Origin: Podarcis erhardii
Taxonomy: Eukaryota
NCBI GenBank assembly: GCA_964252035.1
Contig: OZ176216.1
DNA: 64,000 nucleotides
Direction: 5' to 3' (one strand)
The notes under the pieces were generated by a model. The model did not search any database. It had not been told where the DNA came from and saw nothing but the letters and a program-made list of their open reading frames with translations. This document shows positions 29,357 through 64,000 of the stretch, in pieces (within the stretch, counting starts at the first letter, position 1; each line of letters starts with the position of its first letter). The translations under genes were made by a program, and so were the position numbers.

Positions 29357-29517
29357 GAGCTACAGCGCCTTTCCTATGTCACATGTTCTTAGGTTTGTGC
29401 TGAGAAAATCTACTGCTGATAAGGAGTCCTGAAATGACCCCAAATCATCTGTGGGGCTCTGAATGCTTTCTGCTTTCTCCCAAACCCTGATTCCTTTTTG
29501 CTTCTTTTGCTTTTCAG

Positions 29518-29653
29518 CCTTCCTCCCCAGCAGCTTCTGCATGTACAGCACAGTAATAGCAATGACGGGGTGGTACATGGATAAAATCTCTCTGGCGGTC
29601 CTGGGCGTGGCTGCAGGAGCCATTGTGGGCTGGCCTTTCAGTGCAGCACTTGG
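29518..29653 (+). CDS. ALG9: ALG9 exon 6
   Basis: FLPSSFCMYSTVIAMTGWYMDKISLAVLGVAAGAIVGWPFSAAL-GG|GTAAG. Confidence 0.96.
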
Positions 29654-30676
29654 GTAAGCAAAAGGGAGTGGGGAATGTGGAAGCATTCAGGGACAGGTAG
29701 CTCTAGGTGGTCCCTAGCCAGCTGCAAGGGCAATGATGTCTCTCCAAGACTGATCAGTTTCACTATTGTCCTCAGGTTATTATAGCTCTGTGAGTAGGGC
29801 TGCAATGTTTGATTTGCTTGGGATTGTAGCTGCGCAATTGTTGTTCCTTGAAGAAATGTAAATGTTGTGCTTTGGAACCTGGTTGTTTTGCATTCCATTC
29901 AGGTGCTGTGACACTCAGCTATTGAAAACTCTTTAATTAACTTCCTAGGCCCCATGGTGGCTAGAGGAAAGTTTCAGAAATATGTGGGAGGTACCGTCAA
30001 AATTAGCGAGAGCTTCCATTAGTTAAGAGTAAACCTGGAAGCATTCAGCTATTATTGCAACTGGAATTGTTCAAGTTAAGAAATTATATCACCATGTGAT
30101 TTATAAAATTCTGAGCAGAGAACTTTGCATGCTGCCATCACAAGTGATACCTTAAGACACTGCTTTGTAGGCACTAAGTAGGTTTCTGTAGCAGTAGTGC
30201 TTCCCTAGAAAAGAGAGAGGAGAGATAACAGGTAGCTCTTATCCTGCTATGTTCACCATGGAAAGGGGATTCCCTCTGTTACTCCAAAAGGATTGCTCTA
30301 ACTTACCTCTCTCCGCTCTTTGCACCCCTCCCTTTTTTGTCCTCTATTTCCAAAGTTATCCAGCCAAATTGTTCCAAACTATGCTTTTTCTATCTCTGTT
30401 CCTTTTGCTGCTCTGTGTTACAGTGCTATTTATCTATTCCCATGATTCATAAATGTCACTCCCTACTCCCTCTGCTGTTCTTAGGGGGAAAAAATGAATT
30501 CCTTTGCATCCTTGATTAATTTAGAAACAGGATTATATTCAAAGGTAGGTGGGTGGGGCTCCACATAGTTGGTTTTGGGAGGGGGGAGGACTAGAGTGAG
30601 TGTGCAAGGGTCAACTGATAAATGTTTTTAAAATCCAAGTTGAGATGGGAATATTTTTGGCATCTCCTTTTGCCAG

Positions 30677-33117: not shown

Positions 33118-33320
33118 GACGGGGCGAGCTCCCGTTGCTTGGTCCCTTCTCCTGCCAACCTAGCAGTTCGAAAGCACGTCAACGTGCAAGTAGATAAATA
33201 GGTACCGCTGGCTTCCTTGGCCAATAAAGCGAGATGAGTGCCGCAACCCCAGAGTCGGTCACGACTGGACCTAATGGTCAGGGGTATCTGTACCTTTACC
33301 TTAGAGTACCTTTACCTCAG
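33118..33320 (+). mobile_element. Sauria SINE, 5'-truncated and internally deleted
   Basis: gagctcccgttgct..ataggtaccgct joined directly to ggcttccttggccaataaagcg..tacctttacc. Confidence 0.85.
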
Positions 33321-43001: not shown

Positions 43002-45833
43002 GTAAGATGCTGAAAAGCACAAGGGGAAAAGGAGGGCTATAGGGGGCGCATTCTGCCTAGTTAGGGATCTCTGCAAAACTCAATTCGGGAACTAGCATCT
43101 TTTGGGGAGGGAGGGATGGAAAAGTCGTTACCTGAAAAAGGGAGCAGTAGTCATGTCTGTGTGTGCATGTGTGTGCGCTCTTAATCTGCACAGGCAAACT
43201 GCACCTGCTCTGTCTACTCCTTATGACAGTGGTGTTTGGAATGGCAACAGCCTGCACTGCTGGTGGATTTTCAATAAAGTTTCCTTTTGGGATGACTTGG
43301 CCCAGGGTTTGAGTCATGCTAGAGGTCGGGAAGGAAGGAATTCCCCCCCAGCAGGGAGGACTGTTGGCGGCCAGCAGCACTCTTCTTCCTTCCTTCCCCC
43401 CTTTCCCTTGCAAGTGAGTTGTAGACTGCTAAAAAGATTACTGAGGTGTGAAGTTAATCACATCCCCTCACTTCTAAATTTGCATTTCCCCTGTGTCATC
43501 CTCTTCCTCTCGGCAACTGTTCTGGCTGAAGTTTTGCTCCCAAGTCTACTGGTCCGAGGGGGGCTCACCTTTCAGGAAAGATCTGCCAGCCTCATGAGAC
43601 ACTGAGGGTGGGATTTTGGGTCCCATGCAATCCTCTTCCCCTTCCAGCCTCACGTTGACGGCTGCGACATGTCTGGCTCCTCAGAAGTGTTCACCAGCTG
43701 TCTGGCTTCCCCAGCACTCCCCACGCTTTTCTCTTTATATATTTTAAAAGATAAGAGCATGATCGAGAATTGTTATTTTAAAAAAATAAATAAAAAGCTT
43801 GATGAGTGGGTGGAAGGGAAGCCAGCTCTGTGAGAATTTCCCCAAGGAAGGTGGCAGTGGGAGATGTGTTAATAGGTTACCAGCTTGCTGGAGCATCTCA
43901 ATTGGCAGCTCGGGGGGGGGGGTGGCAGGAAGAGGTTCAGCTGACTGTGCTGGCGACCCAGAGAGGCAGCATCCGAAGCAGCTGCTTCCATCCTTGGCCA
44001 CTTCTGCCAATACTGAATCTGAAGAAATTACATGGTGTTAAATATTCCATAGCTTGTGCAGCCTGGCAATAATTCTATGTGTGATGAAGTGGTATTTTTC
44101 ACTGTGGTTTGGCTTATTCATTCGCAAAACATATTTGTCTCACTGTCAATGCATATCTCCAGTGCTTTAGTTTCTGAAAAGAAAGATATCTGACCTTAAG
44201 TCTGCCCTCCTCACCTTGGGGAAATCCTTTCCTCAAATGTCAGATGTGTTTGTTCTGCACACGCCCAGAGGAAGTGTCACTTTCATTATTTTATATGTTC
44301 CAAAGGGAAATTGGGGGGGGTGTTAAAAACTGAAAAGTTACTGGGGCTCAGTCCTGGCATAAGTTTAATCCCTGAATATTCTAAGCAGCAAGCATGAATT
44401 GAAGCCCTGAGCCCTTTCCACTCCTTCCTTTTTATGGGAACCTGGTGGAAGACACTCCGTTGACTTGCCTGTAGCAGTGACAGCTGGTTACTGCTTGCTC
44501 CTGGTTCAGAGGGAGGAAGAGCGAGAGCCGGGGGCATGCTGGATTTTGGCAGCCTCTAGATCTGGCAGCTGCTCCGTCGATCCAAACATAGCGGTTCCAA
44601 AAAGAGAGAGTGGCGGGTGTGTGCAGGGGAATGGATCTGTTAATAGCTATTGGCTGTTTTCAGAGACTGGAATTTGACCGAGGAGATGGAGGGAGAGGGG
44701 AGGTCACGTGGCTGCTTGCAAACGGACTCGAACTTCTGGCTGGCTGCCCCTCTCTCAGCCCGGCTGACCTCCACTGCAGCGCAGCCAGCTGCCTAACTCC
44801 TGAACCCTCAAGGGGAGAATGTGGACTAACAACTGTCTGTTTCTCTGCCCCCCCTTTGTGGTCTCCAGGCACTGTGTAAATAAAAAACCACCGGCTTGAC
44901 CATGACCACTGCTCAGTGTTCTCAGGGAATTTCTCCATGGGTGGGCCTTAAGTTTAGCTGCTCCTGCTGCATTCTGTACCTGAGAGTGCCACAATTCTGC
45001 TCTTGAAACTATTTGTGTAAATGTAGTAATATAGCAGGGCTGTAGCTGAGATATGGGTTTTCAAGTAACATTTTGGGCTTGGAGGCTGGGGTAGGAGGGA
45101 CCAGTGCACAAACACAGGAGAGCCAGTGGGGGCTGCTGCTTTGGGCTGCCACTCTGCGCCTGCTGCCTGACGAATGCGTTTTATCTTTCTCACAACTACT
45201 GTTCCTCTTCTCTGGGAAACTGAATGACCCTGGCTGCTCGATTCATGCTTGCTGAACCAGAGGCTTCTGGGACACAAAGCGTCCCCCATTGACGTCAGCC
45301 AGTGCCGTGGTAACTCTCAGTTGGCTTTGATAAATGGTGCTGCTAATTGAATTAGAGAGCACTCAGAGCCATCGACTAATTATGCTACTCAGGCAGCAGC
45401 TTTGTCTGGGTCCATTTAATTCTGCATTGGCTGAGCGCTCCAGTTCTGGGGGAGGAAAGGGCAGGATGGATTAGGGATCCCAGCTGAGGCAGCAAAGGCA
45501 TGTGCCAGCACTTTTAAACCAAGGAGACCCTCCCCATTCCCCACCAGCCGCCTTAGCACTTCCCCACACCCTCAAGCATACAATAAGCTACCAGGGGCTT
45601 TAAGCAGGCCAGCCCTCCCTGTCAAATTCTTTTTTGTTCTCCTTTCCCTATAAGTGATGTTCAACTGCCCTTAATGTTCCAATTTTCCCCTGCATATCTA
45701 GGGAGTCTTAGAAACCCTCACTTTCTCTGTGGGTAGGCCTGTTTTGGTGCCTTCCCACCACCAAGTTTGCTATTAATAGCTAGCAATGTGTGTGTCATAC
45801 ATTTTATTTTCAAAAGCTTCCTTGGTTTTCCAG

Positions 45834-45957
45834 GTCCTCAAAGTTCTTTCGGGCCTTCTACATCCCCTTCCTGTCCCACCAGCACACAACGTACATGAAC
45901 TATACCATCCTGAAGCCTCGGCGCTTCAAGCAAGCCAGGAAGAAAGCTGGAGGCTAG
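45834..45957 (+). CDS. ALG9: ALG9 exon 15 (to stop; ORF track shows the wrong frame)
   Basis: CAG|G-SSKFFRAFYIPFLSHQHTTYMNYTILKPRRFKQARKKAGG*; human SSKLLRAFYVPFLS..NYTILKPRKAKQIRKKSGG; total 608 aa. Confidence 0.95.
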
Positions 45958-46835
45958 CTCGAGCCTCTGGCGATCCAACGAGAACCGGCCGAAGATGCTG
46001 GCTTCTTCTTCAGGTGTCTCAATCCCACCTGCCCACTCCCATTTTTTGTAAGAGTGGCAGTGGCAGTGGCTGTGGTGGGTGGGTAGGGAAATGCTTGGGA
46101 AGGTTTCCCTTTTTTGGCTGGCTGTGCTGCAATATTACTGACCACCTGATCTGCCATTGTTTGGGGGCTCTGCTTCGCTTTCAGGAACTCCTGGAAAGTA
46201 TGAGCAAGGCGTCATCTTGCTGAGGAGTCAACAGGAGCAAAAATCTTGGTTTGTGCGAACGTTTACCAAGTTTCTGGCTGAGAGGTAGCCTGGGGCTGCT
46301 GTGGGTCTTTCAGTATTTCCCCTCCACCACAGAACATCTCGCCAACCCCGGAGGGAAGTTTTTATTTTGGGAGGGGGGTGTATGTGTGTGTCTTAAGAGG
46401 CCTTTTGGAGAGAGAAAACAGCCTCACCAGCAGGAATGCACAACGCTCCCTGGTGGGTCTTCAGGGGAAAAGGCCCTCCTTGACTCAGATGGAGCAGAAA
46501 TAACTTGCACTTTCGAGAACTGTGACTCTGTTAATTACATAATTTAGTGAAACATCGACTTGTGCGTGAGTGGGTTTTATTTTAAAAACCTCCATTGTCT
46601 GTCTTGTCAGCTGCTGCCAAAACACGGGTTTGTGTAGGGTGCTTTTTTGTTTTAAGTTTCCTTTCACCCACCTCTACATTCTAGCTTCTTTGTGAAATGT
46701 CTGGCTTTGTAATGTTTCCAAATTTACTAAAGTGCAGAAGGGGGGTCTCCTCCTCACTGCACACCTTTCGCTGTGGAATACAGTGGCTTCTCATTCAGTC
46801 TGCACTGTATGTACTATGAAACTGTGTCATTAGTG

Positions 46836-46841
46836 ATTAAA
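46836..46841 (+). terminator. ALG9: Candidate ALG9 polyadenylation signal
   Basis: ATTAAA preceded by TGTA elements and followed by GT-rich sequence; first canonical AATAAA outside the L1 is at 49459. Confidence 0.4.
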
Positions 46842-47762
46842 AATTAGGCTTGTACCCCCCCCAAATGCAGTTTTAGGTGTGGAAGGAAAGTGTGTGTGTT
46901 GGTCTCTCTCTGTCTTTCATGCACCCAAAGCTCCAGTCTAACTGCATCATCCACAGCCTCAAAAGTAGATGAGAAAAGTGCTGACGACATGTGAGAGCAA
47001 CAGGTGATTTATTTCATGACGGGAAGGCCAAGGTCTCCCTTCTGAGGCTAGAGCTGACATTTTAAGCATCCAATGAGACTATCCTTCACCATGTACAGCT
47101 AATGCATCTAGCCGGGGGCCCTGAAGAAGTGGGAGGCAGCAGATGATTTTTCACCCTAAACTTACGCATGTTAAAAAAAAATCACAAAACATGTTATTCT
47201 GAAGAAATGTTTGAGGAAGCCAGTCCCAGAAGCAAATGAGTTGATTTTGGTCACTTGACCTTGTTCACCTGAATTGTAAGGAAGAAAATGCAGCCGCTAA
47301 GTTTTTCCACAAAAGATAACGTAACTAAATATTTCACATGGGAGCAGGGCTGCAGGCTGAAGATTCATTGCCACCAGGGTGGCCAGAAGTGGGATTGAAT
47401 GAACATCTCCACCCCAACACCGGAACAACACACAGAGGTTGCGAATCTGGAAAACCGTCGCATCATCCTCACAGGAAGGGCAGGAGATGTGGCTGGGCAA
47501 AGCTGTGAAGAGGAGAAGAGAAAGGGTTGTGTCAGAAACAGACTTAAGGAGAGCTGCTAGCCTCTCCCTCCACAGCTGAGTTGGTCCCTATTTGGAAACA
47601 GCAGAGGCTGCCTGGGATCTCCAGTGTGGCCTGATTCAGAATCTGGTGATTTTTTCCCCCTTTTAACATACTTTAGAGAAGAAATAGGAGAGTGCTGGTC
47701 CCATTTAAACACTGTACTTGCTGATTGCCCTTTTAGTCCTTCTAAACAGCACTGGCTTCTCT

Positions 47763-48856
47763 CCTTTTTTTTATATATATATATTTTTTATTGATTTTCC
47801 AACACAAATTTAAAACAAAATAACATACACACATAGACAAACAAAAACATATAAACAAGTATAATTTCAAATCCTCTTTTTCATAAACCTTCTTTCTCGG
47901 ACTTCCCCTTACCTCCCCCTCTCTGCATCCTTGTTTTAAATTTTTTCAACAACCCTTCGCTCCAATTAAATAATAACTTATTTTCTTTTTCAATTTCTTC
48001 TCCTAATTCATCAATCAATTACAGCTATAATTCTATTTTTTCCTTTCCCTTGACATTTTAGCACTCATCAATTTTACAACAGTTCTTAAGATATACTTTA
48101 AATTTCTTCCAATCTTCTTCCACCGTCTCTTTCTCTTGGTCACGGATTCTGCCAGTCATTTCCGCCAGTCCCATAAAGTCAATCACTTTCGTCTGCCATT
48201 CTTCCAGTGTGGGTAGTTCTTGTGTCTTCCAATACTTTGCTAAAAGAATCCTTGCTGCTGTGGTGGAATACATAAAAAAAGTCCTATCCTTCCTTGACAC
48301 CAGTTGGCCGACCATGCCCAAAATAAATGCCTCTGGTTTCTTATGAAAAGTACATTTAAGTACCTTCTTAATTTCATTATAAATCATTTCCCAAAAGGCC
48401 TTAATCTTTGGGCAAGTCCACCAAAGGTGAAAGAAGGTACCTTCAGTCTCATTACATTTCCAACATTTGTTATTGGGCAGATGATAAATTTTTGCAAGCT
48501 TGACTGGGGTCATGTACCACCTGTAAATCATTTTCATAATATTTTCTCTTAAGGCATTACATGCCGTAAATTTTATGCCGGTGGTCCATAACTGTTCCCA
48601 GTCAGCAAACATAATATCATGACCAATGTCTTGTGCCCACTTAATCATAGCTGATTTAACTGTCTCATCTAGTGTATTCCACTTCAACAACAGATTATAC
48701 ATTCTTGATAAATTCTTAGTATTGGGTTCTAACAGTTCTATTTCTAGTTTTGATTTCTCCACTTGGAAGCCAATTTTCCTGTCTTGATTAAACACCTCCA
48801 ATATTTGATAATAATGGAGCCAATCTCGTACCTTGGACTTTATTTTCTCAAAACTT
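47763..48856 (-). mobile_element. Young 5'-truncated L1/Tx1-type LINE
   Basis: 15-bp TSD AGCACTGGCTTCTCT at 47748-47762 and 48857-48871; open ORF2 C-terminus with CWKC..TFFHLWWTCP zinc knuckle; AATAAA and A/TA tail. Confidence 0.92.
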
Positions 48857-51800
48857 AGCACTGGCTTCTCTGCTGCCCACACCCCAAAGCTGTGCTCTCC
48901 TGTGCCTTGTAACAGCTTTGCAAAAGGCAAAAAAAATTCAACCCTCCTTAACAGCTAGGAATATCTTGCTACACAAAGCAGGCTGCATGAAGGCATATCG
49001 TCCTCACCACAAGAGTTTTGCACATGGGTGCAACCGTGCATGTGTGGCCTCCGTCCCCATTTGCTCAGTAGGGCAAAGAAGAGGCTCACGTGTGCCTTGC
49101 TATGTACAGAAAGGCAGAGAGCAGCTGGGAGTTTTGTTAGTCACGATGTCTCGAGCTGATGTTCTGGAGACTGGAGCGACCCTTCCAGCTGGTTTATGCA
49201 ATGCAGCATGAATCATGCCATCAACAAGCTCGGGGCCTATTATTAGATTAGGAAACTGCTGCCTCAATACAAGATCTGCTCATAAAGATCAGTTATTTTT
49301 TACCACAGTTCTCAACTAGGGGATGCTGGCCAGAGAAAATAAGAGGCTCTTTGCTTCTTAGGAATGCCTCTTCTCCTGCAGCTCAACTAACCTTTGACAT
49401 CCAGTACAGAACTTTGTTGTTGCCCGAGTTTTAATATTTGTCACTATCAGGAACTTGCAATAAAAAGCTGACTTTGCATGCTTCAATTAAAGCTTGGGCA
49501 CACCCCCTCCCCGACTTCTGAGCGATCACATTAATGACCAAAGAATCCTTTTGCAGCTAAGACCTGGAGCCAGTATTTCCTTCCTGCTAGTGACCCGGGT
49601 CCACTGATATGAAGCTGCCATTGACTCATCTAGTTTAGCATTGTCTACACTGACTAGCAGCAGTTCTTGAGGGTTTCAGGCAGGGTGACCTCTAGTGGAG
49701 GCTACTCTGTTAGGGCTAACAGGGCACAGCCTTACCAAGCTCTGACCTCAGCTAGTCTGCACCTGCCTACCTTTTTGCTTGCAACCAATCAAGAGATGTC
49801 TCTACCTGCCATTGGCTCTGGCTGCGCTGCCTGTTAGCTTTGTTTCTGCCCTAATGGTCTCAATGGGCATCAACCAGAACTGGTTCTCTCCTGACCCTAC
49901 CTAGAGTTGGGAGGGACTGAACCAGGGCCTTCTGCATTCAAGGCAGAGTACCAATGATCTATGACCAAATTTTCTACACCTTTTTCTCAGTGAGAGAAAC
50001 CTTCTCACTGCAGGGCTGCCCAAAGGAGGTCTTACTAAGAGAATCAGAAGTGTGTTTTACAACAGGGTGTATTCAGCCTAATGGGTGAAACATTGTGCAT
50101 TCCCTCAGGGCTGCCTAACATTATTAAGCATAACAACAAAGCAGCTGCATCTGGATTACGAATCAAACTGACAGACCCTGGAACACAAGCAGGGTGGGGT
50201 TTCTGGACCAGCACCAAATTCTGAGGAGGTTCCAGGTTGTCTCTACAGCAGTTCACACACCAGTTACAATCTATTGTGCCCACTAAGCTTGTGAGTCAGC
50301 ATGGCAGGCATCAGCTTGTGGTGCAAACATACCGCTCCAGCAGAGCTGTTGCCTCCCCCAAAATACCTACCCTCTGCTGTTCTATGGTTGCAGCATAATG
50401 TTCTCTCTTCTTGCAATACAACTTTTCAATCTCTCAAAAAGTATCAAGATAACTTACCAAAGAGTCACCCTCTTCAGACCACTCTATATATATATATATA
50501 AAATCAATGGGGAAGCTTTTGCTGGGTTGTATATACCACCTGAGGCCAAGGGTGTGTGTCCAGGTTTTAATGTCCCTTGTGGGGAAACACTCCCAACTGC
50601 ATAGAAAACTAACTCATCCAGAGAAAGCATTGGATCCAGAGGTTCGCCCTGTGGATTTCTTAATCTCAAAGAAGAAAAGGCGAAGGCAGCAAAATAACAC
50701 GCGATAAAATCTCACAGCTGCTGAAAAATGTGTTATCTATGGATAATCCTTTCCCCTTAACCCCACTGCCTGACACTTTCCAAGAGCCACTATGTCTGTT
50801 GATTTGCAGAGGTCAAATCACTCCCATCCCGTCCCTCCCCTCATTGGGCTCACTAGGGGACAGAAGTAATCTGGAGTTGGGGAACTAGAAGGGCCAGCTC
50901 TAATATTGGGTAGAGGGAGGAAGCTCGGGCAACACTCGGGTGGGGTGGGAAGGGAAGGGGGTGGTGGTGGTGGTGGTACTGGAGGACAGAGCTATGTGGA
51001 CCATGAGGTGTGACAGGTGCTCTTCATCCTGCCTTCAGGTACAGCAGAGGACATTGTCAACATTGAAAAGCCACCTGCCAGTCTGTGCATGGAAGGGGTT
51101 GTGAGCAGTAGAGGCTGCTGCATTAGGGGAAAAGGGGGCACTGCCCCAGCAACCTGTCTGCCTTCAACCTACAAGAGCTCAGGGTGGCTCCACTTTCATT
51201 GGCTCTGGCGCCACCTACTGTTGGTCTCCCTGCCTTCCACCCTACAGGCGTGAAATATGCAATTTGTCCTTCCCCCTCTCAGCAGAAGTTCTCGGGCCGG
51301 TCCTGAGAACCAGCCAGCACTTGTCCCCTTTGGAAAACACCCTATGCTCAAAACACACTAGGCCATTGGAATAAAAGGGGGAAATCCCACCAAATCCACC
51401 TTCACAGCACTTGAGAGGCCTTGCCTCCTTAGCACGGTCTTTCGTCACCCCCTGCCTGGCTTCCAGAAGGAGGAGCCTTGACCTCAGTTCGCCTTGGCAC
51501 CGCAAGGGTCTGCTCAGGGCAGGCTCTTTCCTGGGCTCGCTCCTGGCAGTAAACAGACAGCGTTGCGTCACCATCAGGCTCACCTTGTGACCAGCCAGCC
51601 GCCAGGAATGCAGCGACCCTTTCTCCAGGGAGCCTGAGGCCTTAGCGTTGGTTTTGGCTGCCTCCCAGTTGCTGCCTCAATCTGCGTTCAGAAGAGCTCT
51701 TGTTTCCCTCTGGATTCGCATCCGAGAGAGCGCTGTGACAACTTCGGCCCGCTCACTCTGCAGGAGAAAAACAGACAATCCTGCTCTCTGTCCACAGGTC

Positions 51801-52071
51801 ACCCTGCCCGGCTACCTCTCTCTGTCTGAAGCACTAACGTTGACTTTCCAGTGACGACCTCCCCTCCCTCTTTATGGGGGCGATGAGCTGGTGGGTGAAG
51901 CACGGAGGGAGCCGAGCAAGCTGCCTCTTTGCATTAATCCCCCTGCTGTTGCGAAGCCTCGCTGTAGATGGAAAGAATGAGTTCGCGCTGGGCTCGGGGC
52001 TGCAGCAGCTTGCCAGCTGGAAACAGCTCGCAGCGTGCAACTCGCCTGCTCTCTCACATAAATGACAAAGG

Positions 52072-52403
52072 GAGGAAGCTGCCTTATATATGCCGAGTCA
52101 GAGAACTGGTCCCTCCAGCTCAGCATTGCCCGCACTGACTGGCAGCAGCTCTCCACAGAGTTTCAGACGGGAGGTTTCCCCAGTCCTAATGGGAGTTGCT
52201 GGGATTTGAAAGCGGGGCCTTCTGTGGGCAAGCAAACCCTCCATTGCTGAGATATGTGGCCCTTAAGATGCAGGAAGCTGCCATTTACCAAGCCAGACCA
52301 ATGATGCATTTAGCTCAGCCTCACCAGCACTGACTGGCAGTGGCTCTCCAAGGTTTCAGATGGGGCATTCCCAGCCCTACCAGGTGACACCAGAGATTGA
52401 ATT
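52072..52403 (-). mobile_element. Two tandem tRNA-derived squamate SINEs
   Basis: aggaagctgcc..agctcag..cactgactggcag..ctctcca..gggatttgaa motif occurs twice. Confidence 0.65.
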
Positions 52404-52760
52404 AAAGATAAAGCGTAAAGGGACCCCTGACCATTAGGTCCAGTCGTTGCCGACTCTGGGGTTGCAGCGCTCATCTCGATTTATTGGCTGAGGGAGCTGG
52501 TGTACAGCTTCTGGGTCATGTGGCCAGCATGACTAAGCAGCTTCTGGCGAACCAGAGCAGCGCACGGAAACACTGTTTACCTTCCCGCTGGAGTGGTACC
52601 TATCTAACTACTTGCACTTTGACGTGCTTTCGAACTGCTAGGTGGGCAGCAGCAGGGACCAAGCAATGGGAGCTCATCCTGTCGCGGGGATTCAAACCGC
52701 CAACCTTCTGATCGGCAAGTCCTAGGCTGTGTGGTTTAACTCACAGCGCCAGCCGCGCCC
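52404..52760 (-). mobile_element. Sauria SINE inserted into an older SINE
   Basis: Full-length reverse copy; TSD CAG(A/G)GATTGAATT at 52391-52403 and 52761-52773. Confidence 0.9.
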
Positions 52761-55129
52761 CAGGGATTGAATTGGGGAGAAGCAAAAGCAGCGGTAGCCC
52801 CTTCCTTGCCTCTGCCAGGGGGCCACCACCTCTCCTTCCTTTAAACCATTGCTCAAATGTCCCTTTATGTGGGGAGCCCCTTGCATAAAATCCCTCATTC
52901 CTGGCACAAATTGGTATAAGGGTATTTGCCCATGTCTACTTCCCTGGCTGCCAAATGTTTGGAAATTTCTCGAGCCAGAGGCTTCCGGTTGCTAATTTCA
53001 CTGAACGGCACTTGGTGTTTTATTATACCTTTAATAGTTTATTCGTGGCATCGAGAATACCAGATTCACTTTTTGTTTCGTTCTTTAATAATGTGAAGAA
53101 GGGGGTGTTATGGGGATCGTACTGTGCTCCCCAATAAGGGCTTGCCATTTGCCTGACCCCTATTTTTCAAAACACAGTAAGTAATAAAGAGGTCTGGCAT
53201 GCATGTTAAGTAGGGAACAAATAGGGAGAAGGGGAGCTGCTCAACCTTCGCTGCTCCTCATGAGCAACTGTGATGGGATCCTCGCAGTGCCAGAATAAAT
53301 TCTCCTTGGTACCACCACAAAGAGAACGCTCAGCCCAGCCCTGCTGGCTGTTTATCAAAAATGCGCTTGTTTTTGAGGGGGAAAAATGTTAACAAAACAA
53401 GACTGGAAGGTTTTGGACTTTGAACTGGAACAAGGATAAATAAATAGCTGATAAAAGAGAGGCAGGAACAGGAGCCAGTGGGCTTTGAAGTGCATCGGGG
53501 GCATGAGGCAAGAATTGCAGGCCGAGAGCCGGAGAACACGCAGAGACAGGAATGATCATAATATTTTGTAACTGGTGGTACGAAGAACACCCCCCCCCCC
53601 ATATCCACATAATTCCTTGCTTTGTAGAGGTGGATGCCTGAAAGCTTACAACATTAAGATGACTTGGAAGGATACTGGCTTCCAAAGCATCCCTGGGAAT
53701 TTTGGTATAAAAGGGAGGGTTATTGTGAGAACTCTTGTTAGCAGAGGTGCTTGCATTTTCTAAGCAGCTGCAGTTCCCACAGGGTTCAGATTTGAAAAAT
53801 CAAACACTGATGTAAGCCCTTTGGAGAACAAGAAAGAGAAAATAAAAGCATACTGGCACAGAGAGGAATATATGTGTCGGACACACGTAATGTACGAATG
53901 GCCTTCAGAAAACGAGGGACTGCATTCATCAAGTCCAGGAGTCAAGTCAGAAAGAAACAGTGGCTGAATCCTACAGACAACCTCTTACCACAAAGTGCGT
54001 GTAAATTGCTTTGCAGGGTGGTTTTGTTTTGTTTTTTAAATCTGGATAACCAGCCAGAGTACTACTGGGCAGACCCATACCCCAAATTTATGTGGTAAGA
54101 CAGTGGGAATCACAGCATGCTTCTGAACAACTTGCTGGCTGAGTACTCATCCCAATTTGTGGGGAGATTAGATGAGGTTGCGTCAAAGCAAGGGTCGGCC
54201 TGCACTTTCCAAGATGTTTCCCACTCACTTCCCTTACGGTAAAAGTCTGATCATCAACCATCAACCGTAATTGTACAGCCGGGATTTGGCCAGTTTGTGA
54301 TGGAAACCCACACAAAAATAGCAACAGCCTTGGAACGCCCAAACGGAAGGGTGAGAACAGAAATATATCGGGTTTCCAACATGCTTGAAAGGACTTAATG
54401 TTATTAATGGATTAATGGATCCAGTATTTGTTTCTAGATAAAGCTGGCTATAAGGCTGTTTTGACTCGGAAAGTTTAGTCTGCCATTGTAACTCCACTTA
54501 CCTGGGAGAAAGTGTGCGTGCATTGTCCTTCCAGTCTGAAAGGCTGCTCCTTCAGGTAGTTGACTCTACCTTTCTACGATTCAGTGACAGGTGACATGGC
54601 TGCCCCCCCCCCATCCACCAGGGACAGCCAAAGCAGAAGCCTACTCACTCAATATGCCAAATGCCCCCCCCCCTTTGCTCACAGCAAGCCTGCAGAGGCA
54701 GTCACTGACTCTAAGGACAAACATGTTATGTTGTTTGGAGGGGTTACGATGCCAGCCGGGTGTTGTCCAAGATACCAGCCCCCACAGTGGCAAGAAAGGG
54801 AGATGACGGATGTGCACTTTGTTAAATTTCCAAAGAACGTGGCTTTGATAATAATAAAAATAATAATAAACCCGTTTCCTTGGCAACTGCTGATGTCAGG
54901 CTTGCTCTGGCAGGGAGTGTCGGCTGTGCGGACCCCTCAGAGCTTGAGGCTCACTGGAAGAAAGAGAGAGAAAAGCAAGTGTCAATAAATAACCCACCTC
55001 AACCGGCAAGTCACAAAACACTTCCTGGCCATTCACTGGTCTTGAACTCAGACCCCTCTGCCGATCCAAAGAGGCTCACTTGAGGTAAAACGTTTTAGTA
55101 GTTGTAAGGTGCTTATTGTCTTTGCAATC

Positions 55130-55615
55130 ACAACAGCAATGTGAGAGGTCATATATTCCTATTTTACAGACGCAACATTGAGGCCAAGAGACAGCAACTA
55201 GGTCAGTGGCCAAGAGCCCAGACTTAAGGGCAACTCAGGACAGATGTGGGCACGTAGCCTTTTCTAGTCTCCTTTCTAAGTTCACCTCCTCTGCTTATTC
55301 ATTATTGGCTTGCAGGCATATAATCTCCATCAAGGTTCACAGCCGGTATCTGGAAAATTGATCTCTTGAACTCTACATGTTTCAAGTCTCAGCCGTCAGA
55401 TTTGGGAGCTGGTGCAGCGTCAACAGCTAAGAGGGCAAGTTATGTATGAGTCGATATGTCTGCGCTTCAAACCTTGTGTCTGCTGTGAGCTCACCAGTGG
55501 GATTTTCTGTGTCAATTAAGTAACGCCCCCTCCACGACAGGGATGACTGTGGTCTACCTTACAGTGTTCTTGTAAGGTTTACTGAGCCAACACATATATG
55601 CTAAGAAGTGCTGGG
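55130..55615. mobile_element. Old MIR/CORE-like SINE remnants
   Basis: cctattttacaga..tgaggc and ctaccttacagtgttcttgtaagg cores; heavily decayed. Confidence 0.35.
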
Positions 55616-56217
55616 TTGAAAGGCTCTCCTAACACCTCCCAGTTACATCAACAACACAGAGATACCAGCGTTAATTGTGACGGGTTGATTCAGCCAGAAC
55701 AAGAATCTTGATACATGGCCAGACTGAATATCAACTGCTTTCTTTGCTTCTTCTGGGAACAACCCCCGCTGCTTCCAGTCCCCAGGTGCGTTGTGGCTGC
55801 TGCATGCAAGGCTGCAGAGATGGAGATTTATGCATTATGCACACTAATCCAAGTGTGGCTGTAAACGTAACCTGGGGTGGGGTGGGGGGAGAGGGGGCCG
55901 CAGCTTCTCTTCCTGCACAAGGTGACTGTGGGTCAGGCACTGGCAAGTGCGAGCAGAGCGTCTCCTTGGAGCCGTTGCCATGCCAACACATCTGCCTAGG
56001 TGATTGCCACTTGTTGAAGGTCGGAGATGAATTAGCAGCTGGAGGAAATGGCAAGGGGGAATGAGAGAGCTGAAGGGTTTAACACTCTCCAGCCAAAGGG
56101 TTTGACACCCAATTTCTCTTGCTAAAAGGTGCACTCTAAAGGAGCAGCGTCCCTTTCTCTGAGACTTCTACACTGCCTTGCAGATGCAAATTGAAGTGCT
56201 GTATAAGCAGATTGGTA

Positions 56218-56570
56218 GGGACGCGGGTGGTGCTGTGGGTTAAACCACAGAGCCTAGGACTTGCCAATCAGAAGGTCGGAGGTTCGAATCCCCGCAGCGG
56301 GGTGAGCTCCCGTTGCTCGGTCCCTGCTGCTGCCAACCTAGCAGTTCGAAAGCACGTCAAAGTGCAAGTAGATAAATAGGTACCACTCCGGCAGGAAGGT
56401 AAAAGGCATTTCCGTGGCTGCTCTGGTTTGCCAGAAGCAGCTTAGTCATGCTGGCCACATGACCCAGAAGCTGTACGCTGGCTCCCTCGGCCAATAAAGC
56501 GAGATGAGTGCCACAACCCCAGTCGGCCACGACTGGACCTAATGATCAGGGATCCCTTTACCTTTACCTT
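56218..56570 (+). mobile_element. Sauria SINE, full length
   Basis: gggacgcgggtggtgctgtgggttaaacc..ggttcgaatcc..ccctttacctttacctt. Confidence 0.92.
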
Positions 56571-57692
56571 CTATCCAGAGAGCCATCAGCCTCTAAAAGA
56601 AGAGAGGCCTGGGGGGGCGGTGTCAATCATTACTTGCTCCCCCAAAGCTGATATAAAGTAAAGCAGCAGCAGTCAAACACTGAGCTTTATGGATTCTTTC
56701 CCCAGGAAGCACAAATTCCGAATCCAAATTTGTTAGGTAATATTTAATATTGCTTTAATTTATTCTGCTTCCACAATCTGGGTTAACTAATAACTTGGAA
56801 GTTATCTGGAAACTTTTGAGGCTAGAAACAGGTGAGCAACAGAGATGTTTCCTTGTTATTCTCCGGGGTTAAATGAGAAAGAAGCGAGGAACAGAGATGT
56901 GCAGTCTTCAGGGTGCTGAATTTGGAAATGGGTGGCCGGCTGATTCTCCGTTTTTGCATGACCAGTCCTGAGATAAACAGAAAGCAGCCAGTGAAAATGT
57001 CTCTTGCCCAAGGTGTTTCCACGCTGAGCACAGGCAGATTTTGTTTCTCCAGGCACCTTCCCCCTCTTTTCCGCTCCTTTGAATTCGTACTCTGTACAAA
57101 AAAAGGAGAAAAGAAATATACTGCAGAAAAAGGCATCTGGCCTGTGCAGTTTTCTTTGCAGTAGGATGGCCTCAGCAGGGCCTCGCTGAAAGGGTAATGC
57201 ATACTCTGGCAATTTCAATGCAGGGTATTATTTACCCAGCTGACGTCATTCAGAGCACATTCTCCGCTTCCATTCTCTCTAGAAGCCTCCAGGATATAAG
57301 GCACCTGATCGTTTTACTGGCTTGAAAATGCTGGCTAGCCCTTTATATAGAGCACAGTGCATGAAGCAGAGGAAGGAAAGAGAGCGAGCGAGCGCGTCAT
57401 CTTGGACTATTTAGGAGAGTAAATAGCCTTCCCGGTTTAATTTGCTTCCTTCTATGCTCTTGTTGCCAATTCTCCCCCTCCCCAAAACTCTAGATGGATT
57501 ATTGCAAAAAAAGACAGGTTGCTACTATTTATGTTCCAAAATCTGAGGGAAAGGTTTCAAACAACTGACATGTCTGTCCCCTTCAAATGTAGACATTAAA
57601 TCGCTTTTTTAACACATGGAGGATTTTAAAAGAACTCACATGATATGGTCATTAACAATGATGTGTTCAGAGAAAGAGCTCAAGTCTACATA

Positions 57693-57823
57693 CTGTATTT
57701 TTCCATGTATAAGACTCAGATTTAAGAAAATGGGGGAGAGATGTATCCGTGTATAAGACACCCCCTAATTTTTGAATTCATTTTTTAGGGGAAAAACCTA
57801 GTCTTATACACAGAAAAATATGG
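57693..57823. mobile_element. pogo/Tc1-mariner type MITE (131 bp)
   Basis: TA-flanked TIR ctgtatttttccatgtataagact / agtcttatacacagaaaaatatgg. Confidence 0.8.
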
Positions 57824-59944
57824 TATTCTTGTTTCAGAGAAAAAGTCTCCTTCATCATTTTATCTTAAGAGCAACCTTCCAAAAGAGCAGTTGGTCAGGA
57901 TAGCAAGTGCATTTACAAAGCCAAACAGTATGAATATGACTGGTTTGTCTTCTTCTCGCAAGTAAGTTCCAACTAGGAATGTGTAGATAAAGCCTGTGCT
58001 CATCACGCCATATTTATATGCCAAGTTGGTGAAGGCTGCTCTAAGGTGTTCCGGAAAACCTCTGCTTGGCTAGCTTGTTAGTAAAATGAGAGCCTGTGCT
58101 TTACAAATGAAAACCCATAACGTATTGCAAATATTCCCCCATAGGCAAATGTATTGGTGGGAGGTATACACAGTGATTCACACACAGCCATCTTAAAAAA
58201 CCCCATCATCCACTGCAGCCAATGAATGGTGGAACTCCCTGCCGTAGGAGACAATGGATACCAGTGATAAAGCAGGACAGAAATGGGACAGGGGCATTGC
58301 TTTGCAATTAGTAGCCTCCTCAGGTCATGCCTGCCAATGCTGTGGGGCTAAAGGAGCCGCCATGTACACAGTTGAACTCCTGACCTGTTTAGCCTGCTAT
58401 AAATGTATGTTCCTGTGCAGATTACAAATGGTTAATATTTTCTTCCTTCAACTTCTCAAATCAGTTTCTTCCATCACACACATTACTGAGTAGAGAGACC
58501 TTAAGATTTTATATAACCACACACAGATGTTGTTGCTTATCAAATGTCTCAGATTTGCTAGACGTAGCTTCTGATTAGCGTATGACTTCTCTGCAAAGCC
58601 TGGCTCTGGCTTGCACTGAAAAACAAGTCTGAATATAGTCTTATTATTTTTTAAGTTCCCCAATTAATCTATGGAATCCATTTGCAACTCCCATCGTATC
58701 CGGCAAACAGAATTATTTATATCCTAATGGAGAGAAAGTACAAGAAAAGGAGAATCATTGCAATGACATCTTGTAATGTTGCTCCTGTTTTTCATCACCA
58801 TAATATCCTCCCCCCGATGTCAACAACAGAGCGTGAATTGAACAGGGCCGCTTGACATCTTGCTGAAGAAACTACTTTGGCAAGAAGGTGGTTTGCTTTT
58901 CATGTTACATATTATATATTCTGCAGAGTATATGTCTGCACTTCCCTGCCAGTGGTGGCACCAAAAATATATTAGGAGGGAAGGTCAGGGCATGGCAAAG
59001 GGAGAGAAACAGGGGTGAGATTTGCTCCACACATTAGATTTCTGAAAGGGAAACAATATATTTCCCATTAATGGTTTGATCCTAAAGGTAAAGGGGCAGA
59101 GGAACTCCCTCCTGCCCCAGTGCTAGCTAGGCATTCAGCCGTCTCCTAGCTTTGCTCTACCCCGGCAACTTGACAATTCCACAAAGACCGCTCAAAGTCT
59201 ATTGCAACTTAAAAAGCCTGGTTATTTTCCAGGGGTGAAGGTGTGGAGTCCCAAGAGAGAAAATGCCTCTGCAGTCCAGGACATCACTCCTTGCTCAGTC
59301 TCTTTCTGGCAGGCTGCCTGCAAAGTAAAAACTCTTCTCACTGTTTGCTTCCAGACCCAAAGGTGGCTGACTATTCTTACAGGACTTGGGAAGGAAGCCT
59401 TTTGAGAATCGGGTTTTTCAATTTGTTGCCTACAGGTGCGTGCAGAATCTCCTCCAGGGGAAAGGCTACCAAACATGGCATGCAAAGGAACAGAGAAGGC
59501 CACTGCAGCTCACTAATTTTTTTTTATATGTGTATATATATAAAAAAACCAGAAGGTCCATGTTCTTTATTTTGCATTAATACACGGTAATTGCTTTTAC
59601 AGAGTCCAGCATACCAACTGCATGTTGATTCTACAGATGGATGCGCCAAAAACCGGCGCTGACCAAACTAGTGCATTTCTCCCAAAGCGAAGACTAAAAC
59701 CCTTTTAACTCTTCTTAAAAAAATACATTAAAGAACGTACCACACACACATATTGCACTTGTCTCCATATGAAAAATTTGTTTAACCCCCCCCCCCGCCC
59801 CATGTACATCTCACCAAAGTCTCTTCAAAGGAACCTGTATTAAAACTAATAAAGCTAGTAATTGTTATACAGTAGTATACACAAATCCTCTAACAACAGA
59901 CATCAACAGCAGACTCGACAGAAGCGGCTATTCTGAAGGAGCAG

Positions 59945-59946
<2 letters not shown>

Positions 59947-59998
<52 letters not shown>
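59947..59998. repeat. (AG)n microsatellite
   Basis: Direct inspection. Confidence 0.95.
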
Positions 59999-60001
<3 letters not shown>

Positions 60002-61142
60002 CAGGCAAGTGCGCTAAGGATATGTAGAGTTAAGAAAAATGGATTCCTCTGTTGTAATATAAATGACAACAAATGTTCCGAAACACAAGCTGTTAAGCAG
60101 AAGGGGTTAGCTATGCCTGATATAGTTCAACATTCAGAACTTCTGCCCCATCTGCTGAGGTACAAAGCGACTGCCAAGGAAAGTGATGCTTATCACTTCT
60201 CTGCACCTGGATATGGAGCTACAGCCACCTCCTGAGGCTGGCTACAGGTTGTGCTCTGGGTGCCCCCGCCCCACCCAGGGGAAGGAAAAGCTGTGCAAGC
60301 CAAAGCTACATTATTCCTTGGTGGATCTCTGCTCTTCGGCTGCCCTCTGCAAGGACGTGAGCTGGGATCCTAACAAACCTTACTCCCCAGTCGCCACGGA
60401 GTAACGTCTTGCAAAGGAGATGCCAGCTCACGAATCTCCTGGGCGTTAAGTCAAGGACCACCAACATACAGTACCAGCGCTTATATCTTCCACGCACGAT
60501 GAAAGCCTCCTCCTATTGTGGGAAACAGCTCCGGAGACTAAGAACATGGAGGGTAGAATAGACAACACAAGGTCTGAACCTGGCGTCCAGCCCATCAAGG
60601 TTTTGGCTAACACAGACCATTGCTGCAATGCCCCCGGTGAAAAGCCTCTGTGGGTTGGACAGGGTCCAAAGGCTGAGGTTGCCTTCTCCACAGAGCAAAG
60701 GGGAGAGGAATGGCTGACCTAAGCTTGCTCACAGCACCACCACCATATGCAAACTGAATAAAGTAAGAGGTTAGCAGCTGGGTGGGCAGGTCTCAAGGGC
60801 CAGTGGGGGTTCCTCCCACTGCTTACAAGGAAATAAGGCAGTTGGCGTCAGCTTGGCTGACCTCTCCTCCCCACTCAAAGTGCATAGGATATAGCAGGAA
60901 AGGATTTCCTTGCGGGAAAAGCACCTTAAGTCAACGTGCTTCAGCAGTTTACAAGTCAACAGAAGGTTATTAATTCCTGGCTCGCCTCTCAAGAACCCAA
61001 AGGTCCCGGTTCCTAAGGGCAAGGATTGTCCACAGGAAGGAATTCCGCAAGGCAAGAGGTCTCTTCAGGACACAGCTCCTTGCTGAATCAAAGCCTGTCT
61101 CCAAGTCACTCATTTCTCTGAGAGTTCAAAACTTGGCTGAGG

Positions 61143-61170
61143 CGGGGGTGGGGGTGGGGGTGGGGGTGGG
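61143..61170. repeat. (GGGGGT)n tract, G-quadruplex forming
   Basis: Five G-runs separated by single T. Confidence 0.85.
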
Positions 61171-63283
61171 ATTAATGGCAAAGACAGCAGCTAGGAGCAA
61201 ACAGTTGGTGTGGCAATTAAAACGGGAAGTTTAAGCATCGCACAGTGTGAATGCGGCACGTGGACGAAAATGGGTCGGGAGGGGAGGGGTAAAGTTTCCC
61301 CTTGAAGAAGAGAGGCACAGTTCTCACCACCAAGCTGGGCTGCACCATTTCAGACTGTAGGGAGGGGTCAGGGCTGGAGAGGGGCTCACAGGATGGAATG
61401 TTCCCCCTTACAAGCCCCCTCCAAATTAGGGCTGAACTGGAAGTTCTCCGTTGGGAACCTTTTGTTTAGAAAACTGGGAAGCCTGACAAGGCACCATTTC
61501 AGCAACTTGGGGAGTGAGAGGGCTTGAGGTTTGTGCTTCTTTTCTTTAAAGCATCTGAATATCTTGAAAACAGGTGGTAGCTGCTGCAGAGGTCCTATTG
61601 CCAGCTGCTTCCTGTCAGCTGCCTTCCCTCTGCTGCCCCACACCCAGAAGGGCCCAGATGGGGCACGGCCACACCTGCAGCCCAAAGTGGTGCAGCTCAG
61701 GTGCCAGTTGAGCCCCTCAGTTGAGAACCAGGCCTACATTTGTCTTCAGCCAGATCAACTTTGCTAATCCATTGTTCTTTGTGCTTAAAACAAATCTGTG
61801 TTGTGCTTAAATCTTCATCTGCTCCCAGCAGGATGCTCAGTAACCCGTAGTGCCTTTCCTAACACTGTCACGGCATTTATTATTATCTAAATCCTCTTAC
61901 GTGACAAATTCAAGGGATCCTCTGTATTCTTTCCTATGGTTCTGTGGCCAGCGTGTCATGCATCGCAAAAGGTCTCGACCAAACGCTTGATAGAGCAGAT
62001 TGCCTGTTGAAGTGGTTAACAAGTCAACAGTTATTGATCCTAAATATTGCTGTAATACTTTTTAACATTTCAGATATACTAATGATGAACAAGTCAGAAA
62101 CACTTAAGGAGAACGTTAAACCTGCATTCCACATGGTGGAATTTGAGCTCTGAAGGGACTTTGGCGTCAGCATGGACATAAACGGGGGTATTTTCTACTT
62201 CAGAAAAAGAAAAAGAAAAAGAAAAAGCGTAAGAGTCTCAAAATGAACCCAAAAAGGCACAGCACTATCACTTCACATGGGTTTTCTGATAAGCTCATTT
62301 TGTTTCGTCCTTAAAATGCTAATTCCCTAAATAACTGTCGAAATATACAAAGCCTAAGAAACCAAAAGCAATACACACTGCTTAGTCCAAAGTAAAGTTG
62401 CTTCTTCTTTTAAAACAGAAAAGCAACAAAGGGCAGCTTATAACTACTTCTCCAGTGATCACAGCTCCCCCCATGCTCCCCCAAGGGGCAACATTGTATA
62501 GCCTCCCCACACACCCCTGGCTTTTCCCCACCCCCACACCTCCACCTCCCAATTCTTGTCCATTGATCTCTGGAGGGGCCTCCAACACACACTTAAGTTC
62601 TATGAAAATCCTGGACGTCCAACTCCAGCCTTCTTTTGACAACGGTATAGGGACCCTTTCGTCACAAGATCCAGGGGCTTGTCAGGGTTCATAAAGATCA
62701 GGAATTTCCTGGCGAGAGTCAACAGAAGAAGTGGAGATTGTGAGAGGCGCCATGTGAGTCCTATGAGGATCAGCTGCAGTCAAGTTCTACACCAGCAGCT
62801 CAGAGAAAGGTTGTTCAATCCCCAGCACGCTACGTTCCTGATTTGCTTCAATATCAGCGCACAACTTTGCAGCGTTCCAATGAAAAATGTATTGCTTTTA
62901 TTGCCAAGTAGCAAGGTGTCGTCCCATGTTTGCTACTCTTCTTGATCCCTTCCAGGCTTCCTCCGACAGGGGCTGCATGGTTTGCAGATCTCCTTCTTCC
63001 CTGCAAGTGTGTCGCCTCTTTCCTTTCAAAGTAGTCCCTTCTATCGAAAGTGCAGTACCTTGCCTCCACAACCCCTGCCATCGAGTTTCCTTGCAGAGCG
63101 AGTGATGCTCAGTCATTTCCCTGCTAGTACCAATTTAGGAGGGTTTGTATAGTCATCTGTTAAAGTCAAGGGTTGGGTCACAAACCATGAATTTTAGGGA
63201 TGGGACGTACATGGAAATCCACATGCATTTCCGTCCTTCACTTCAAACAATCCACCTTCCATCCGCAACACTCCAAAAACTTG

Positions 63284-63851
63284 CTAGTTCACCAAGACGT
63301 AGCCACCATGTTGGGGGTCAACAGTCTCCATCATTTCACAATCAAAGAGCCCTGGCAGCTCCACCAGGCCTAACGCCTCGTAGCTAGACTGGGATCCAGG
63401 AGGGTCAGAACTCCGCCGGCTGTCGGTCATTGCTACACTGCTCTGCTGGGTCGGGCCCAGGGGATATTGATGCTGGCTGGCATAGTCTGGTTCAGACGAG
63501 GTGCCAACGGGCAATTCGCAAGTCTGATAGGGATACTGCTGCTGTTGCAGGGGGATCTGCGAGGGCAGTCGAGAGGAACCGTGGATCGGGGGTGAGGGTG
63601 GCTGGTCAAGTTGAAGCTTCTGGTATTGGCTAAGGAAAGGGTCGTATTGCATTTGTTCGGCAGAAGGCTCCATGACGGGGCTCAGGGGCTGCACCAAACT
63701 GAACTGGGGAGGGGGGGGTGGCTGCTGCTCCTCGTGGCATGTGAGGGGCAGCTGGCTTGGTCTGGGGTAGGTACTTTCCGCTATTTGCATCTGGTTGAAA
63801 TACGCCTGCAGCTGGGATTGCTTCTGGAGAAACAGCCGCTTCTGGTGCAAC
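63284..63851 (-). CDS. SIK2: Salt-inducible kinase 2, last coding exon
   Basis: ctctctcgatcCAG|[51 protein letters not shown]; human ends LFDCEMLDAVDPQHNGYVLVN. Confidence 0.95.
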
Positions 63852-64000
63852 CTGGATCGAGAGAGACCAAGAAAAGTTGGTTCAGCCAGTTTCTTAAAAG
63901 CCATGCCACTTTCTTCTCCTCTAGAGGCAAGGATTCTAGCATCAGACATAAAAAATTGACATCCAGTCTAAACCTCCACTTGCAGCAAGGATCAGAAAAC

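Follow-up and report, generated by a model that had tools for sequence, protein, structure and literature searches.

All PP2A holoenzymes are assembled on either of only two scaffolds, one of which is encoded by PPP2R1B (A-beta). In mammals this gene and SIK2 overlap tail to tail, the long A-beta isoforms ending within the SIK2 3'UTR region. A-beta is able to replace PPP2R1A in the PP2A complex (PMC5483016). We found no report of A-beta loss in squamates, lizards or reptiles in the literature searched. A screen by Salve, Sonal and Vijay (BMC Biol 2026; PMC13005343) yielded 53 genes that lack annotation in every one of the 30 RefSeq squamates; the genes named there do not include PPP2R1B. Losses attributed there to segmental deletion (IL34 and others) share a preserved order and orientation of the flanking genes, a shortened intergenic distance, a lack of exon remnants and the presence of a paralogue that could compensate.

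The locus described here, from a window of 64,000 nucleotides of Podarcis erhardii DNA (the whole stretch that was analysed), has these features as well, the paralogue that could compensate being PPP2R1A. It differs from the published cases in that PPP2R1B is absent from the 53-gene list, in that the event would concern a sub-lineage and not all squamates, and in that it is known here from one locus. With unitary pseudogenes it shares the lack of a functional copy of a conserved vertebrate gene where synteny predicts one, and with the "hidden" genes of sauropsid assemblies, which are GC-rich and gap-associated, a gene that is expected from synteny and is not found in the assembly. On balance, we lean toward a segmental deletion, in an ancestor of the wall lizard and its close relatives, that excised the PPP2R1B unit from the ALG9-SIK2 interval where it ancestrally lay.

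PP2A-A coding sequence in the window

The first-pass annotation had reported that PPP2R1B is not recognisable between ALG9 and SIK2, and tblastn, HMM, nhmmer, blastn and Pfam searches all bore this out. No PP2A-A exon, intact or decayed, was found between the ALG9 stop and the SIK2 stop, nor elsewhere in the window. When 21 metagenome-derived full-length PP2A-A open reading frames and about 211 database PP2A-A proteins were used as tblastn queries, the best E values were 0.04 to 0.06. A search of an animal PP2A-A HMM against all 3,194 stop-free frames of at least 12 aa on both strands (hmmsearch --max) gave a best E value of 12. Fourteen exon DNA profiles, built from frog and two mammals, produced no nhmmer match inside the interval; their best match anywhere in the window (E=0.004) covered 27 nt of the last ALG9 intron. 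Comparison by blastn with the elephant locus (L123) and a second mammalian locus (L125) detected no PPP2R1B exon in the lizard interval. HEAT families were missing from Pfam scans of the stop-free plus-strand frames of at least 25 aa and of the minus-strand frames of at least 33 aa in 45900-61230, and a degenerate WRVRYMVA pattern had no match with three or fewer mismatches. Thus, neither the exons for 15 HEAT repeats that characterize a PP2A scaffold A gene (PPP2R1A/PPP2R1B) were recovered by protein and profile searches, nor any DNA similarity to orthologue exons by nhmmer and blastn. Throughout the window, the scores of protein, profile and DNA-profile searches for PP2A-A are at chance level.

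The same procedures were effective on a known gene. The HMM and tblastn pipelines recovered all 14 to 15 exons of the frog A-beta locus (L122), and blastn of frog against elephant at equal settings aligned all 14 exons at 75 to 86% identity.

Two tblastn matches were considered and judged to be due to chance. One, at 46187-46258 (TPGKYEQGVI-LLRSQQEQKSWFVR), resembled the KSWRVR motif and matched one "A alpha" entry with an E value of 0.055; it was rejected because its frame scored E=30 with the HMM, no vertebrate query supported it and nothing collinear lay nearby. The other, at 51861-52040 on the minus strand, had 25% identity (E=0.04).

Human protein entries were excluded from the window searches, and a metagenome contig (L021) resembling a PPP2R1A cDNA of a vertebrate, possibly of human, was excluded from all comparisons. 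Cluster listings and 50% representatives for A-beta comprised mammals, frogs, fishes and invertebrates only. No sauropsid A-beta representative was listed in the homologous-protein searches either, but canonical clusters seem to be missing from them too, so this was not counted as evidence. Among the individual queries, P0171 and P0102 proved mammal-like and no encoding contig was found for P0164. The frog loci had no neighbour genes within 10 kb.

Flanking genes and non-coding landmarks

On the left, the interval is bounded by the 3' part of the last ALG9 coding exon, a plus-strand frame at 45784..45957 whose translation ends in ...YTILKPRRFKQARKKAGG at the stop codon 45955-45957. Seven plus-strand frames of the window matching Glyco_transf_22 (Pfam) and an exon at 29517-29654 (E=4e-8) identified this gene as ALG9. 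Upstream of it, Pfam domains of the CRYAB type (Crystallin, HSP20) and of the FDXACB1 type (BMT5-like, FDX-ACB) were found. On the right lies the last SIK2 coding exon, a C-terminal open frame of 221 aa on the minus strand (63284..63949) with its stop at 63284-63286. Two segments, 63285-63387 and 63609-63853, aligned by blastn with elephant DNA at L123 67364-67983, inside a SIK-type kinase gene (932 aa, Pkinase and UBA_SIK3) that is arranged tail-to-tail with PPP2R1B. The SIK2 C-terminal exon had no usable Atlas match. Exons of ALG9 and SIK2 were queried one by one, without joined spliced models.

Collinear conserved blocks link 57202-63853 with the elephant region that extends from the last canonical PPP2R1B exon to SIK2. 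The leftmost of the landmarks is a conserved non-coding element of 66 bp on the plus strand (57202..57268), which contains a perfect palindromic CRE (TGACGTCA). It is 80.6% identical over 67 bp to elephant L123 61114-61180 (blastn, E=2e-10) and 81.8% identical over 66 bp to L125 39986-40051 (E=3e-11), where its counterpart sits 9.4 kb past the last A-beta exon; a three-way alignment was also used for comparison. Judged by this similarity, the element is orthologous to a site downstream of the last canonical PPP2R1B exon in mammals.

The SIK2 3'UTR appears to occupy about 3.7 kb on the minus strand (59545..63283), as delimited by an AATAAA signal at 59566-59571 (minus strand), contigs of RNA runs and blastn blocks. 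Two runs that are probably RNA, X16 and X17, have contigs at 59519-59940 with depths of 61 and 37, respectively; in most of the remaining non-repeat bins of 53941-59500 the depth is 0 to 7, and X17 reaches 11 to 22 in three bins. Further blocks at 62129-62185 and 62252-62394 are collinear by blastn and match the SIK2-proximal region of elephant.

At the distal end of this 3'UTR, a conserved block (59600..59883, plus strand) was detected by both tblastn and blastn. Its segments 59600-59650 and 59659-59694 were matched, in two frames, by the C-terminal extensions of P0075, P0166, P0172, P0158 and P0214, whereas 59666-59883 matched elephant 64520-64712 at the DNA level (E=6e-24), the elephant terminal exon being at 64438-64548. 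The left part of the block therefore corresponds to the alternative last exon that long PPP2R1B isoforms of mammals use. The lizard has retained, together with the adjoining block, a part of the mammalian tail-to-tail overlap, and the distance from the terminal-exon counterpart (59600-59694) to the SIK2 stop is similar, 3.6 kb in lizard versus 2.8 kb in elephant. Unlike in mammals, however, the lizard block is frameshifted, lacks upstream exons and lies under apparent SIK2 3'UTR transcripts; it is therefore conserved as SIK2 3'UTR and not as a PPP2R1B exon.

Flanking genes had been described from the letters as standing in the expected order and orientation, with neither a strong CpG island nor an assembly gap between them. 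These observations held: ALG9 lies upstream, the conserved element, the 3'UTR blocks and the last SIK2 exon are collinear with both L123 and L125, the CpG observed/expected ratio does not exceed 0.56 in 500-bp windows of the interval, and the interval contains zero N.

Origin of the shortened interval

The distance from the ALG9 stop to the SIK2 stop is 17.3 kb. Because its right 6 kb are orthologous to the mammalian stretch between the last canonical PPP2R1B exon and SIK2, the gene body is expected in the remaining 11.2 kb (45958..57201), where no PP2A-A exon was found on either strand. By comparison, the exons of PPP2R1B span about 21.7 kb in frog (L122), 38 kb in elephant and 20.6 kb in L125, spacers not included. 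The ALG9 3'UTR presumably forms the left start of the 11.2 kb. Apart from it, there is nothing but anonymous, for the most part single-copy, DNA with one piece of L1 and two copies of a SINE. The L1 fragment is a 290-aa open frame on the minus strand (48061..48930), which phmmer matched to residues 1050-1251 of the LINE-1 ORF2 protein in the PDB (8uw3, 9k6g; E=2.9e-12). The SINE-like copies at 52404..52761 and 56218..56570 are 88% identical and mutually inverted, and more copies occur at 12888-13265 and 33118-33302. The repeat has a very high copy number: the summed contig depth over 56218..56570 was about 2-3e7 in DNA runs, and all contigs broke there. No Rfam family or tRNA was detected in the interval.

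We propose that a segmental deletion would have taken the whole PPP2R1B transcription unit, from the promoter to exon 15, in the ancestor of the wall lizard and its close relatives. The present interval would then consist of the 3' flank of ALG9, repeats (L1 and SINE) that were inserted later, the ancestral downstream spacer, which carries the CRE element, and the SIK2 3'UTR. Because in-place remnants stay detectable to about 0.3 to 0.4 substitutions per site in a decay simulation (every replicate at 0.3, two out of three at 0.4, none from 0.5 upward), physical removal is more likely than decay, and we infer that PPP2R1B was lost by deletion.

The first-pass annotation had offered lineage-specific loss or relocation of A-beta, with PPP2R1A as the only scaffold left; the absence of the gene from its conserved position, on which both readings build, is supported. 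The deletion may have spared a second copy. A-beta might reside elsewhere in the genome following duplicative transposition, retrocopy formation or a two-break rearrangement, the ancestral copy alone having been deleted; we regard this as possible, although unlikely. The PP2A-A searches covered the 64 kb window, and 17 of the 53 squamate cases were put down to chromosomal rearrangement (PMC13005343). Since the screen does not name PPP2R1B, at least one squamate species, perhaps the present one (at another locus), probably has an annotated orthologue. On the other hand, ALG9, the downstream conserved element and SIK2 are still adjacent and collinear, and therefore a move would have had to excise exactly one gene. 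The omission of PPP2R1B from the same screen suggests that the loss is probably narrower than Squamata, and the squamate-wide event at which the first-pass annotation had hinted is not favoured.

It is very unlikely that the PPP2R1B segment was dropped from the assembly by a false join, for example by collapse between repeat copies, which would leave no Ns. The central and right parts of the interval are common to related organisms. Short-read contigs of organism A tile 53941-59796 with 0 to 2 differences, those of organism B tile 53967-59525 collinearly, and 40 to 90% of the sampled words of 49500-59499 are present under eight organism labels. This comparison extended over 49500-59499 for words and over about 6 of the 17.3 kb for contigs, and thus starts to the right of 45958-49499. 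The contigs break at repeats, namely near 54672-54712, at the SINE (56218-56570) and at a second high-copy repeat (57716-57800), and contigs of both DNA runs stop there with no bridging; all of the loose contig ends listed are at the SINE (56216-56570). However, the contigs beside each break fit the window with 0 to 2 differences in organism A and have equal order in the second organism. A shared artefact is unlikely because an independent species shows the same layout over the tiled part (53967-59525), and the two SINE copies, being inverted, would not collapse as direct repeats. Unlike the "hidden" sauropsid genes, the interval has no runs of N and no extreme GC content (0.35 to 0.59 in 500-bp windows), and short-read contigs from two organisms recovered about 6 kb of it. 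In these respects it does not resemble GC-rich DNA that resists assembly.

The interval also differs from a unitary pseudogene, in which recognisable pieces of exons persist in place and carry inactivating lesions. Here there is neither an exon to recognise nor a stop, frameshift or splice defect to describe, and the sequence is itself missing. At squamate neutral rates, 0.4 to 0.5 substitutions per site would predate crown Squamata. Very old inactivation without deletion, the exons having drifted past recognition, is the least probable explanation: the simulated signal is gone at 0.5 or more substitutions per site and 45958-57201 is mostly anonymous single-copy DNA, but the 11.2 kb left, partly L1 and SINE, amount to about half of the smallest exon span, the adjoining non-coding landmarks are still 70 to 82% identical to mammals, and an age before crown Squamata clashes with the published screen (PMC13005343).

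PP2A scaffolds in wall lizards

The weakest step of the deletion explanation is that the lineage would be without A-beta altogether and dependent on PPP2R1A. We give an even chance to the prediction that wall lizards, possibly all lacertids, have lost A-beta entirely and build every PP2A holoenzyme on PPP2R1A alone. If an A-beta copy exists elsewhere, the finding shrinks to an ordinary single-gene relocation. As to its kind, we judge the case to be an ordinary gene loss. If true, it would be a sub-squamate addition to the catalogue of deletion-driven squamate gene losses (PMC13005343). It would also amount to a naturally occurring knockout, in whole animals, of a conserved ohnologue of vertebrates, and could thereby serve to test in nature which A-beta functions can be dispensed with or are taken over by A-alpha.

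Flanking genes and composition of the ALG9-SIK2 interval

The plus strand of the window encodes CRYAB-type (Crystallin, HSP20) and FDXACB1-type (BMT5-like, FDX-ACB) Pfam domains, and seven of its frames match the Alg9-like mannosyltransferase family. A clean ALG9 exon was found at 29517-29654 (plus strand; E = 4e-8), and the reading frame of this gene ends with a stop codon at 45955-45957 on the same strand. On the minus strand, the nucleotide sequence of an open frame at 63284-63949 matched that of the 3' end of an elephant gene, whose 932-amino-acid product carries Pkinase and UBA_SIK3 domains and which is arranged tail to tail with elephant PPP2R1B. Thus, the interval is flanked by ALG9 and SIK2, in the order and orientation described in the first-pass annotation. 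The longest stop-free frame in the window (434 codons; 19453-20754, plus strand) lies 5' of the mapped ALG9 exons and may be a large FDXACB1-type exon or else a transposon ORF.

The interval comprises 17,326 bases with zero Ns, and its CpG observed/expected ratio reaches at most 0.56 in 500-bp windows, in accord with the earlier claim that it lacks an assembly gap and a strong CpG island. Its GC-richest patch, 51000-52500, is mildly enriched (GC 0.55-0.59; CpG observed/expected up to 0.56) and displayed no similarity to mammalian or frog PPP2R1B promoter regions. The same patch contains a pair of 68-nt direct repeats, 52088-52155 and 52283-52350, that are 74% identical. A C-terminal fragment of L1 ORF2 occupies 48061-48930 on the minus strand (match to LINE-1 ORF2p in the PDB; E = 2.9e-12), and two SINE-like copies with relatives in ALG9 introns are found at 52404-52761 and 56218-56570, inverted with respect to each other. 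The rest of 45958-57201 is single-copy DNA as judged within the window. Rfam and tRNA scans revealed no Rfam family or tRNA in the interval.

Search for PP2A scaffold coding sequence

Queries were obtained by running a degenerate WRVRYMVA pattern over metagenome contigs, which yielded 21 full-length ORFs of the PP2A scaffold subunit (PP2A-A) from diverse eukaryotes. An animal-type ORF (L063) then served as the seed of database protein searches, which returned ~210 PP2A-A proteins from frogs, fishes, mammals, birds (alpha type), and invertebrates. One metagenome contig (L021; ERZ786672 NODE-1287) was excluded from all comparisons. Its 575-codon frame has ends resembling vertebrate A-alpha proteins, and it may be a vertebrate, possibly human, PPP2R1A cDNA derived from host or human contamination.

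Every search bore out the claimed absence of PP2A-A from the interval. The degenerate pattern had no matches in the window, even at three mismatches. HEAT-type families were absent from the stop-free frames scanned with Pfam (at least 25 amino acids on the plus strand; at least 33 on the minus strand, to 61230), with only noise at E > 0.002. A tblastn comparison of the window with the 21 ORFs and the database proteins gave best E-values of 0.04-0.06 and no PP2A-A exon. An HMM of nine animal proteins, run with filters off on 3194 stop-free frames of at least 12 amino acids from both strands, scored no better than E = 12. At the DNA level, nhmmer with 14 exon profiles (frog and two mammals) produced zero matches in the interval, and blastn (word size 7) produced no exon matches to either of two mammalian A-beta loci. 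The controls were positive: the HMM and tblastn pipelines found all 14-15 exons in the frog A-beta locus (L122; E = 1e-6 to 1e-49), and with identical blastn settings 14/14 frog exons aligned to their elephant counterparts (75-86% identity).

Landmarks shared with mammals

Long mammalian A-beta isoforms have a C-terminal extension, to which two reading frames of the window, at 59600-59650 and 59659-59694, showed matches. In the elephant A-beta locus (L123), the long isoform has this extension as its terminal exon, which lies only 2.8 kb away from the SIK2 stop codon. Nucleotide alignment of the window with L123 gave blocks that are collinear and on the same strand: a 66-bp element (window 57202-57268; L123 61114-61180), a block at 59666-59883 (64520-64712; E = 6e-24), two SIK2-proximal blocks at 62129-62185 (66208-66264) and 62252-62394 (66314-66453), and two blocks of the last SIK2 exon at 63285-63387 (67364-67466) and 63609-63853 (67730-67983).

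Contig depth in two probable RNA runs was 61 and 37 at 59519-59940 and 0-7 in most other non-repeat bins of 53941-59500, and an AATAAA motif is found at 59566-59571 on the minus strand. These data place the end of the SIK2 3'UTR near 59545; thus, the apparent homology to a PPP2R1B terminal exon reflects conserved SIK2 3'UTR. Intergenic contigs of low depth (3-7) from the two runs map to 53941-54533, 55285-55519, 56624-56788, and 58437-58627 and could stem from weak non-coding transcription, read-through without splicing, or carried-over DNA.

The 66-bp element also occurs in a second mammal-like A-beta locus (L125), 9.4 kb past the last A-beta exon, and contains a perfect TGACGTCA. It is non-coding, ~81% identical between the lizard and the two mammals, and located ~6 kb past the end of the SIK2 coding region in lizard and elephant alike. 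Its core, GGTATTATTTACCC-N-GCTGACGTCA, contains a cAMP response element that is a perfect palindrome, and the 66-bp element may act as an enhancer near SIK2 that depends on CREB. All DNA from 57202 rightwards is ancestral downstream spacer, and the PPP2R1B gene body belongs in the 11.2 kb of 45958-57201. A-beta exons span ~21.7 kb in frog, 38 kb in elephant, and 20.6 kb in L125.

Assembly reliability and the fate of PPP2R1B

PPP2R1B has been physically deleted from its ancestral locus, with the downstream landmarks kept. We somewhat favor a real, lineage-restricted loss, which would have occurred by segmental deletion. Relocation, raised in the first-pass annotation alongside loss, is possible but distinctly less probable. 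Database protein listings contained no sauropsid A-beta; canonical alpha clusters were missing from them as well, making the blank uninformative. Chicken proteomics lists PPP2R1B (PMC3672136), and nothing relevant was found in the literature linking this gene to squamates.

Misassembly is improbable. Logan contigs from organism A, a label of short-read DNA runs that is probably the species of the window and may be its source sample, tile 53941-59796, each with 0-2 differences from the window. Those from organism B tile 53967-59525 in the order of the window, with 7-14 differing letters per contig (<2.5%). In both sets, the only contig breaks are near 54672-54740, at the SINE, and at a short high-copy repeat, 57716-57800, and the repeats are not bridged. 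This ~85-bp repeat, at which every contig breaks, differs from the SINE at 56218-56570 and has a summed contig depth of ~8-9e4 in both DNA runs. In eight organism labels from 10 studies, 40-90% of the words sampled from 49500-59499 were present. The collinear contigs and shared words argue against a private assembly error.

Extreme decay in place is very unlikely: when the frog gene was mutated in silico with substitutions and indels (three replicates), at least three exons were detected at E < 0.01 in 3/3 replicates at 0.3 substitutions per site and in 2/3 at 0.4, with all signal lost at 0.5 or more.

As for the extent of the favored lineage-restricted loss, the 53 genes named by a 2026 screen for genes without annotation in any of the 30 RefSeq squamates do not include PPP2R1B (PMC13005343). 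Squamate-wide loss of PPP2R1B is therefore unlikely, and the event is either a loss narrower than Squamata or one in which PPP2R1B is annotated elsewhere in these genomes.
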